A stretch of DNA of 64,000 nt from Schizochytrium sp. TIO01. Its lineage: Eukaryota > Protista > Bigyra: Labyrinthulomycetes. The stretch's first letter is position 1; every line of letters starts with the position of its first letter. The notes below the pieces were generated by a model. The model saw only the letters and a list, made by a program, of their open reading frames with translations, searched no databases and had not been told where the DNA came from. Both the position numbers and the translations under genes were made by a program. Positions 10,172 through 10,948 of the stretch are shown piece by piece. The DNA is taken from positions 1,054,001-1,118,000 of the forward strand of contig SMSO01000004.1 in NCBI GenBank assembly GCA_004764695.1, in the 5' to 3' direction.

Positions 10172-10948
10172 GGTGTTGGTGCACGACGATGCCCAATTAT
10201 GCTGCATCGAACTTCGGGTGTGCACTTGAGACCCACCGTTGAATCATCAGCATTGTCCGATGTTTCGAGACAAGATTCCCACTTTCACGGCGTGGGAATC
10301 GGGGCATGCGACTCTCGCTTCACCGTCCTTCCCTCGCCCGGGATTTGCGAGCTAGGTAGGCTGTGAGCTTATCCATCAACCTAAGCAACATCAACCTAAG
10401 CAAACTGTAGAACCGGTGCATTCGGATCGAGATAACTTTCAAGTAATTTGTGAACCTGAGCCGTGAATGGGGGGATTGATTCCCCCTCATCAGACACCAC
10501 GATGTACTACTACTACTATTTCTAATCGAGTCCGCAAGAGCGCGGGGGTCGGGGGTCAAAGGGCGACGACCCATGCGACCGCCAGTGGTTTTTTGTGCAA
10601 AAATAGCTCAGCTCAGTAGTACAGAACTTTCAGAAATCAGTTGTTTAAGAACTCAAACTAAAATAATCATTCATGGGTGGGGTCTCAGGCAGACGTATTC
10701 CTCATTCTCGTATGGTCTCGCGCCTCGTGACTCTCGAGTTTCCAAGAGATAATGAGCATCAACAGCACGCTTTCCACAAGCCGGTACTCCCTACATAGCG
10801 CTACCAGTCTGCTTTTAGTGTACTTTTAATTAACTGACTGGCGGTGAGATACGTAAATATCCATCGATCAATCTTGCGGGCTTGTGGGAGGACTCTGCGC
10901 GAGCTGTGCAAATGTGCTCATGAAAAACCCCATGCAGCCATCAACATC
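10172..10948 (+). ncRNA. Candidate large structured non-coding RNA (telomerase-RNA-like architecture; identity unproven)
   Basis: Nested complementary pairs: 10172-10181/10939-10948, 10201-10207/10932-10938, 10225-10237/10676-10689, 10503-10511/10615-10623, 10752-10759/10914-10921, 10771-10782/10879-10890 and 10799-10809/10836-10846, plus local hairpins. Most non-Watson-Crick positions are G-U on the + strand. No credible ORF. Confidence 0.55.

Follow-up and report, generated by a model that had tools for sequence, protein, structure and literature searches.

A candidate non-coding RNA behind a PrsW gene of Schizochytrium sp. TIO01 and its weak case as a telomerase RNA

In this report, we focus on a 777-nt stretch (10172-10948) of a 64,000-nt piece of the genome of Schizochytrium sp. 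TIO01, the whole of which we call the window. An earlier, sequence-only reading had seen there a single, highly structured RNA of about 780 nt with the layout of a telomerase RNA (TR). This closed 777-nt RNA is probably not one molecule: a transcript boundary at 10595 lies between the two strands of its enclosing helices, and no contig among the sets of the four runs that we compared spans 10172-10948. The stretch would rather be a transcribed spacer downstream of the PrsW gene, divided at 10589-10603 into a left and a right part. On the left (about 10142-10595, + strand) there would be a non-coding RNA of about 455 nt, the 3' end of which would be set by a GC-rich hairpin and then U6. The right part (10596-10948) would be a fast-evolving spacer with low-level transcription, and the pairings between the two parts would be chance inverted repeats. 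That the left part is a separate and functionally constrained RNA with such a hairpin-U6 end is a proposal to which we give somewhat less than an even chance, and we infer its strand, 5' end, polymerase and function. The only specific function for which its sequence appears to offer any support would be that of a telomerase template, and as a TR the locus is at present a weak candidate.

The locus and its transcript contigs

The gene upstream of the stretch encodes a PrsW-family intramembrane protease of 490 aa (8363-9835, + strand; Pfam PF13367, E 4e-11), the closest named homologue of which is found in the thraustochytrid Hondaea fermentalgiana (56% identity). It is followed by a 3' UTR (9836-10141, + strand), which is delimited by contigs of the runs X2, X9 and X6 and carries an AATAAA at 10100-05. 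The next gene, PP2C, also lies on the + strand, and the gap between the two (9836-15050) amounts to 5.2 kb. Coding-like codon use was found in no ORF of this gap, in which we also observed two microsatellites (11099-11224 and about 12330-12420, the latter purine-rich) and low-level transcripts over at least 10400-11081, the strand of which is not given by the contigs. The segment 10142-10595 differs from its surroundings in base composition, with a G+C content of 0.49-0.53 vs 0.38 and 0.33 in the flanks, and codon-use scoring found no convincing ORF within it. A small protein gene was considered and rejected, as the ORFs do not exceed 87 aa and have negative codon scores. The reading as a transposon relic was dropped as well, because 10172-10948 is single-copy in the 64-Mb genome. 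In metagenome contigs, a search by PrsW alignment found no related loci, and an exact 24-mer scan found none either.

The stretch is contained, at least in part, in 23 public runs, which belong to 14 studies. Positions 8000-11095 of the window were compared with the contigs of four of these runs (X1, X2, X6 and X9), small sets that look like RNA. These contigs carry neither strand nor local depth; they therefore show where RNA is located, not its strand or amount, and for the same reason an extension up to 10595 could mean that the PrsW mRNA simply reads through. The contig of this mRNA ends at 10080 in X2, at 10090 in X9 and at 10141 in X6. In X1, the sequence of which is identical to the window, it has a mean depth of 230 and reaches 10595, one base past T6, and a second contig begins at 10595 with a depth of 3.5, that is, about 65-fold lower. 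That a contig of such low depth abuts here speaks for a real fall in RNA at 10595. The termination or end zone can be placed at 10589-10603: it holds T6 on the + strand (10589-94) and A5 (10599-603), which is T5 on the - strand, and convergent RNAs ending within the same few bases would account for the fact that the X1 contigs abut without a shared 31-mer.

Upstream of 10595, the sequence consists of a GC-rich 3' hairpin (about 10541-10580, + strand; present in the centroid and the MFE structure), then CCAGUGG, then U6. The chance that a contig would end exactly behind a hairpin and T6 is roughly 1%. Ends of this type, a hairpin and a U-run, arise when RNA polymerase III terminates or are preserved by La/Lsm-type U-tail binding, and libraries of the poly(A) type would capture an RNA of this kind poorly. 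No AAUAAA is found within 35 nt upstream of 10595, while the proximal mRNA end has its AATAAA. For the sequence-only reading, the T6 run spoke against a single Pol III transcript; it is better read as a possible RNA end.

Coverage elsewhere is low and patchy: it extends over 10126-10367 and 10818-10984 in X6, over 10400-11053 in X2 and over 10532-11081 in X9, the contigs of the last two having depths of 5-12. Part of this coverage speaks against a discrete left-hand RNA, as the X2 and X9 contigs cross T6 (10589-94) unbroken and X2 has zero coverage over 10081-10399. The region 10596-10948, to which X2 and X9 contribute contigs, appears as a variable spacer with low-level transcription.

How such an RNA would be made was approached through its possible promoter and through the other small RNA genes of the genome. 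Heuristic covariance-model searches of the genome found U6, U2, U4, RNase MRP and SRP RNA once each, all of them elsewhere than in the stretch. The same searches returned no nuclear RNase P RNA, U1 or U5, which probably reflects a limit of search sensitivity and not a true absence. The U6 and SRP RNA genes end in T-runs, and the U6 and U4 genes have clear TATA boxes near -30. The TATA-like words near the candidate are weak: they are AATAATTG at 10150-57 and TATATAT at 10069-76, the latter within the UTR. No upstream element common to the U6, MRP, U2, U4 and SRP genes or to the candidate was found, which again counts against a discrete RNA. A 12-mer, ATGCCCAATTAT, occurs twice at a distance of 114 nt, at 10075-10086 in the PrsW 3' UTR, behind TATATAT, and at 10189-10200, near the 5' end that had first been proposed for the RNA; a role as promoter element is conceivable. 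No run of four or more T is present from 10129 to 10588 (about 460 nt), before the T6 at 10589-94, but we rejected this stretch as evidence for Pol III, 8% of the gaps between such runs being that long. We also observed a short GGGTTAGGGTT word about 15 nt past the U2 gene (G000:C36:2305511-2305706, - strand), which is of the vertebrate TTAGGG type and not of the TTAGG type of this genome.

The stretch resembles no known RNA family. Rfam covariance models gave no match on 10172-10948, neither at the gathering score nor up to E=10, and this includes RNase P/MRP, SRP, snRNAs and introns. ARAGORN found no tRNA or tRNA-like element in the stretch that would account for a processing site at 10595. 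The candidate holds a GGGAAUC word similar to the CR-I of the MRP gene, without a covariance-model match.

Pairing and strain variation

The helices and hairpins of the sequence-only reading were located where it had placed them, through the MFE and centroid structures, the pair probabilities and the repeat list. It had described a closing helix with 17 contiguous 3' bases, and only the outer element of this helix stood. Indeed, H1 (10172-81 with 10939-48; 10 bp, 2 G-U) is part of the MFE structure with pair probabilities of 0.82-0.99, while H2 (10201-07 with 10932-38), which on paper makes 7 perfect pairs, has an ensemble probability of 0.01. The dominance of H1 in the ensemble holds when exactly the ends 10172 and 10948 are folded. 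H3 (10225-34 with 10680-89; 10 bp, 1 G-U), the helix said to enclose the core, has probabilities of 0.11-0.71. The hairpins of the core are all found in the MFE or the centroid structure: a perfect 9-bp hairpin, GAUUCCCAC / GUGGGAAUC, at 10274-10300, which is an inverted repeat; a long imperfect hairpin at 10317-10368, a putative template-boundary element; a G6/C5 hairpin at 10467-10490, which caps an arm at 10403-10535; and the hairpin at 10541-77. The first three are present in both structures, on the + strand. In addition, several perfect 9-bp inverted repeats connect 10500-10590 to 10615-10890.

The structure signal of the 777-nt fold is weakly supported: it is marginal and not clearly beyond chance. 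On the + strand, 20 shuffles give 10172-10948 a fold z-score of -3.0, and 80 shuffles one of -2.1, for ends that had been picked to include H1. The sub-parts of this strand are like shuffles, with -0.18 for 10300-10595, -0.98 for 10596-10948 and -0.93 for 10400-11053, and 10141-10595 reaches -1.9. The minus strand of 10172-10948 folds equally well (-255.5 vs -250.1 kcal/mol for the + strand; z -3.0), and 10596-10948 has a z of +0.34 on it. The sequence-only reading had taken the G-U pairs as a sign of a + strand RNA; since both strands fold alike, this argument has no energetic backing. We also counted long-range 10-bp helices with at most 2 G-U in the 777-nt stretch and in tiles of the same size across the window. 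The stretch has 10 of them, a number that is reached or exceeded in 28 of the 317 tiles (9%).

Strain variation was read from the X6 and X9 contigs, which represent a lineage that differs by about 1% from the window, the reference here. Between the two, the PrsW coding sequence (1473 nt) has 11 substitutions (0.75%), and the flanking non-coding sequence (8000-8362, 9836-10141 and 10596-11081; 1155 nt) has 14 substitutions and 5-6 indel events (about 1.7%). Within the latter, the PrsW 3' UTR (9836-10141) accounts for 2 substitutions and 3 indel events and 10596-11081 for 7 substitutions and 2-3 indels. In the pieces of the candidate that are covered (10142-10367 and 10532-10595), no strain difference is listed; the Poisson probability of zero events in these 290 nt is about 0.007 at a rate of about 20 events per 1155 nt, or 0.03 with substitutions only, and this is a small sample from low-depth contigs. 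Two 'other letters' that are not listed belong to the ragged 5' end of the X6 contig, near 10126-40. In the right half, A is replaced by T at 10693 and at 10761, C by T at 10774 and A by G at 10817, and AATC is inserted after 10664, just upstream of the 3' strand of H3. Two of these four substituted positions (10761 and 10774) are unpaired in the MFE structure. As the left part has no differences and the right half varies freely, the left 455 nt or so look constrained, and the right 350 nt or so do not, as far as can be read from the alignments. The second arm that had been proposed on the right (10752-10921) is not supported, as it varies between strains as fast as neutral spacer.

The telomerase RNA question

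The telomere repeat of this genome is TTAGG, as seen from the (CCTAA)n found at contig ends in the 64-Mb, 37-contig assembly. At the left telomere of the contig to which the window belongs (G000:C3:1-600), the CCTAA array has occasional CTAA variant units. A TERT gene is also present, with a match to Telomerase_RBD (PF12009) at G000:C33:3316978-3317133 (- strand), within an open frame of 915 aa. With TTAGG telomeres and a TERT, a TR must therefore exist somewhere in the genome. No thraustochytrid TR is described in the literature that we found, and a full-text search returned no paper naming both subjects. The same holds for the Labyrinthulomycetes at large; the sole stramenopile TR that we found is the predicted one of Blastocystis. 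The telomere-to-telomere assembly of Aurantiochytrium limacinum has (TTAGG)n telomeres, and its chromosome architecture resembles that of the present genome (bioRxiv 10.1101/2023.06.15.545109). Aurantiochytrium joins an unusual telomere, TTAGG, to unusual chromosome ends with subtelomeric rDNA. If confirmed, a thraustochytrid TR would fill a gap in TR evolution, notably regarding Pol III vs Pol II biogenesis in SAR lineages, and would open a way into telomere maintenance in a protist of industrial use.

What brings the left segment into consideration is a 15-nt tandem duplication, CATCAACCTAAGCAA x2 (10374-10403, + strand), found both as a direct repeat and by the template scan. Each copy contains AACCTAA (10378-84 and 10393-99), which makes 1.4 telomere units, or 5+2 nt, the minimum length for a template. 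A ...GGTT-3' end could align on the last two A's of AACCUAA, which would then template AGGTT and give TTAGG repeats. In the predicted structure, AACCUAA lies in a largely open stretch just 3' of the long hairpin (10317-68), which ends 9 nt before the first copy and 24 nt before the second. The 15-mer itself was rejected as a telomere unit, its sole genomic match being the present locus.

Template matches of at least 7 nt are, however, not rare: the 64-kb window has 19, including a 9-mer at 11253-61, and the match, though present, therefore has low weight. The 9-mer, TAACCTAAC (11253-11261, + strand), is the longest telomere-template-like word in the window and lies just after the (AAATAAAGA)n microsatellite at 11099-11224. 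Its surroundings, a G+C-rich, ORF-free region (11236-12135), were rejected as a candidate, as they fold no better than shuffles (z +0.69).

The TR reading proper, as a sub-case of a discrete left-hand RNA, would make 10142-10595 the TR of this thraustochytrid (Labyrinthulomycetes). This RNA, about 455 nt long and ending in a U-run, would bind TERT, use the hairpin at 10317-68 as its boundary and template TTAGG with its tandemly duplicated AACCUAA. Its source may be the extended 3' end of the PrsW mRNA, from which it would be released, or transcription by Pol III directly behind that gene. We consider this reading unlikely. The telomeres, the TERT gene, the position and strand of the motif, the vacant place in the thraustochytrid literature that we found and a U-run end of the kind seen in TRs read by Pol III (ciliates, plants, Blastocystis; PMC8287931) all fit it, but the template is 7 nt long with an alignment region of 2 nt, its tandem duplication is atypical, the core (10300-10595) is like shuffles, and neither a pseudoknot nor a stem-terminus element was identified. 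No pseudoknot or triple helix is evident 3' of the template, a weak negative since ViennaRNA cannot predict pseudoknots. The sole crossing pairing found is that between the look-alike hairpins at 10274-10300 (GATTCCCAC..) and 10467-10490 (..GATTCCCCC), which could cross-pair across the template stretch. The Rfam telomerase models had no match to the candidate up to E=10, which counts little because TRs diverge too fast. The suggestion of a TR, or of another undescribed non-coding RNA, is not supported for a single RNA of 780 nt, while the left 455 nt or so keep the status of a candidate.

Rival readings and known systems

Much of the above could also be expected of an ordinary spacer, in which the PrsW mRNA would have a distal 3' UTR or a read-through tail, next to low-level pervasive or antisense transcription, with features that would arise by chance and a contig end at 10595 that would be an accident of assembly or coverage. 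We hold this to be quite possible, if less than an even bet. A structure signal that is marginal, the same on both strands and missing in sub-regions is what such a spacer would give, 9% of the tiles of the window have as many long-range helices, and template-like 7-mers are common. The patchy, low coverage in three of the four runs, the promoter motif that was not found and the continuity of the X1 contig with the PrsW mRNA point the same way. Against an accident at 10595 speak a contig end placed exactly behind a hairpin and T6, the abutting low-depth contig and the missing poly(A) signal before this position. Nor would an ordinary spacer be expected to have no difference in 290 nt, against the many substitutions and indels of the proximal UTR and of the downstream spacer. 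These are the observations on which we prefer a discrete RNA in the left segment, against which stand a fold z of just -1.9 for 10141-10595 and of -0.18 for 10300-10595, in addition to the points on coverage and promoter raised above.

The model first proposed, a single RNA of about 780 nt (10172-10948) with a terminal helix, a core-enclosing helix and a second arm, appears to us very improbable. The high pair probability of H1 with exact ends, the whole-fold z of -2.1 to -3.0 and the perfect inverted repeats between the two halves are in its favor; the ends were, however, selected to suit the helix, H2 is nearly absent from the ensemble, the minus strand folds as well, and a z-score of this size for the whole disappears in the sub-parts. 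Moreover, no contig spans the stretch and those of X1 break at 10595, and the right half is like neutral spacer, with its AATC insertion next to the core-enclosing helix. In the telomerase-like architecture of 777 nt, inverted repeats that arose by chance on the two sides of a transcript boundary have most likely been over-read.

A discrete left-hand RNA can finally be set beside known systems. The TRs of ciliates, plants and (as a prediction) Blastocystis are transcribed by Pol III and measure about 150-300 nt; they contain a pseudoknot, are conserved across relatives and have a conserved USE + TATA promoter (Fajkus et al. 2021, PMC8287931). The candidate would share with them its possible end, a T-run behind a terminal hairpin, and the telomere-complementary word in an open stretch 3' of a hairpin, and its host is, like Blastocystis, a stramenopile. 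It differs from these TRs (PMC8287931) in its length of about 455 nt, in its 7-nt, duplicated template, and in that no USE, clear TATA or pseudoknot was found. In Ustilago maydis, the TR arises by processing of the 3' UTR of an mRNA that also codes for a protein (PMC9564094). The candidate is likewise contiguous with the upstream PrsW mRNA contig in X1, so that its release from an mRNA precursor is conceivable; it has, however, no homology to that TR, and two sequences that share one contig need not be precursor and product. The lepidopteran TR, of 135 nt, serves TTAGG repeats, as the candidate would, and is transcribed by Pol II and capped; it is biochemically validated and comprises a pseudoknot as well as a defined P1.1 boundary stem (PMC11892584). 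How unspecific a template match is can be seen in Spodoptera, where a putative TTAGG template was present in 3,065 transcripts prior to biochemical filtering (PMC11892584). Distal 3' UTRs and read-through transcripts are the remaining point of comparison. The candidate is like them in lying directly downstream of a + strand gene, within a contig that is continuous in one run, with low and patchy coverage elsewhere. It is unlike them in that its distal end has no poly(A) signal and in that it varies less between strains than the proximal UTR.
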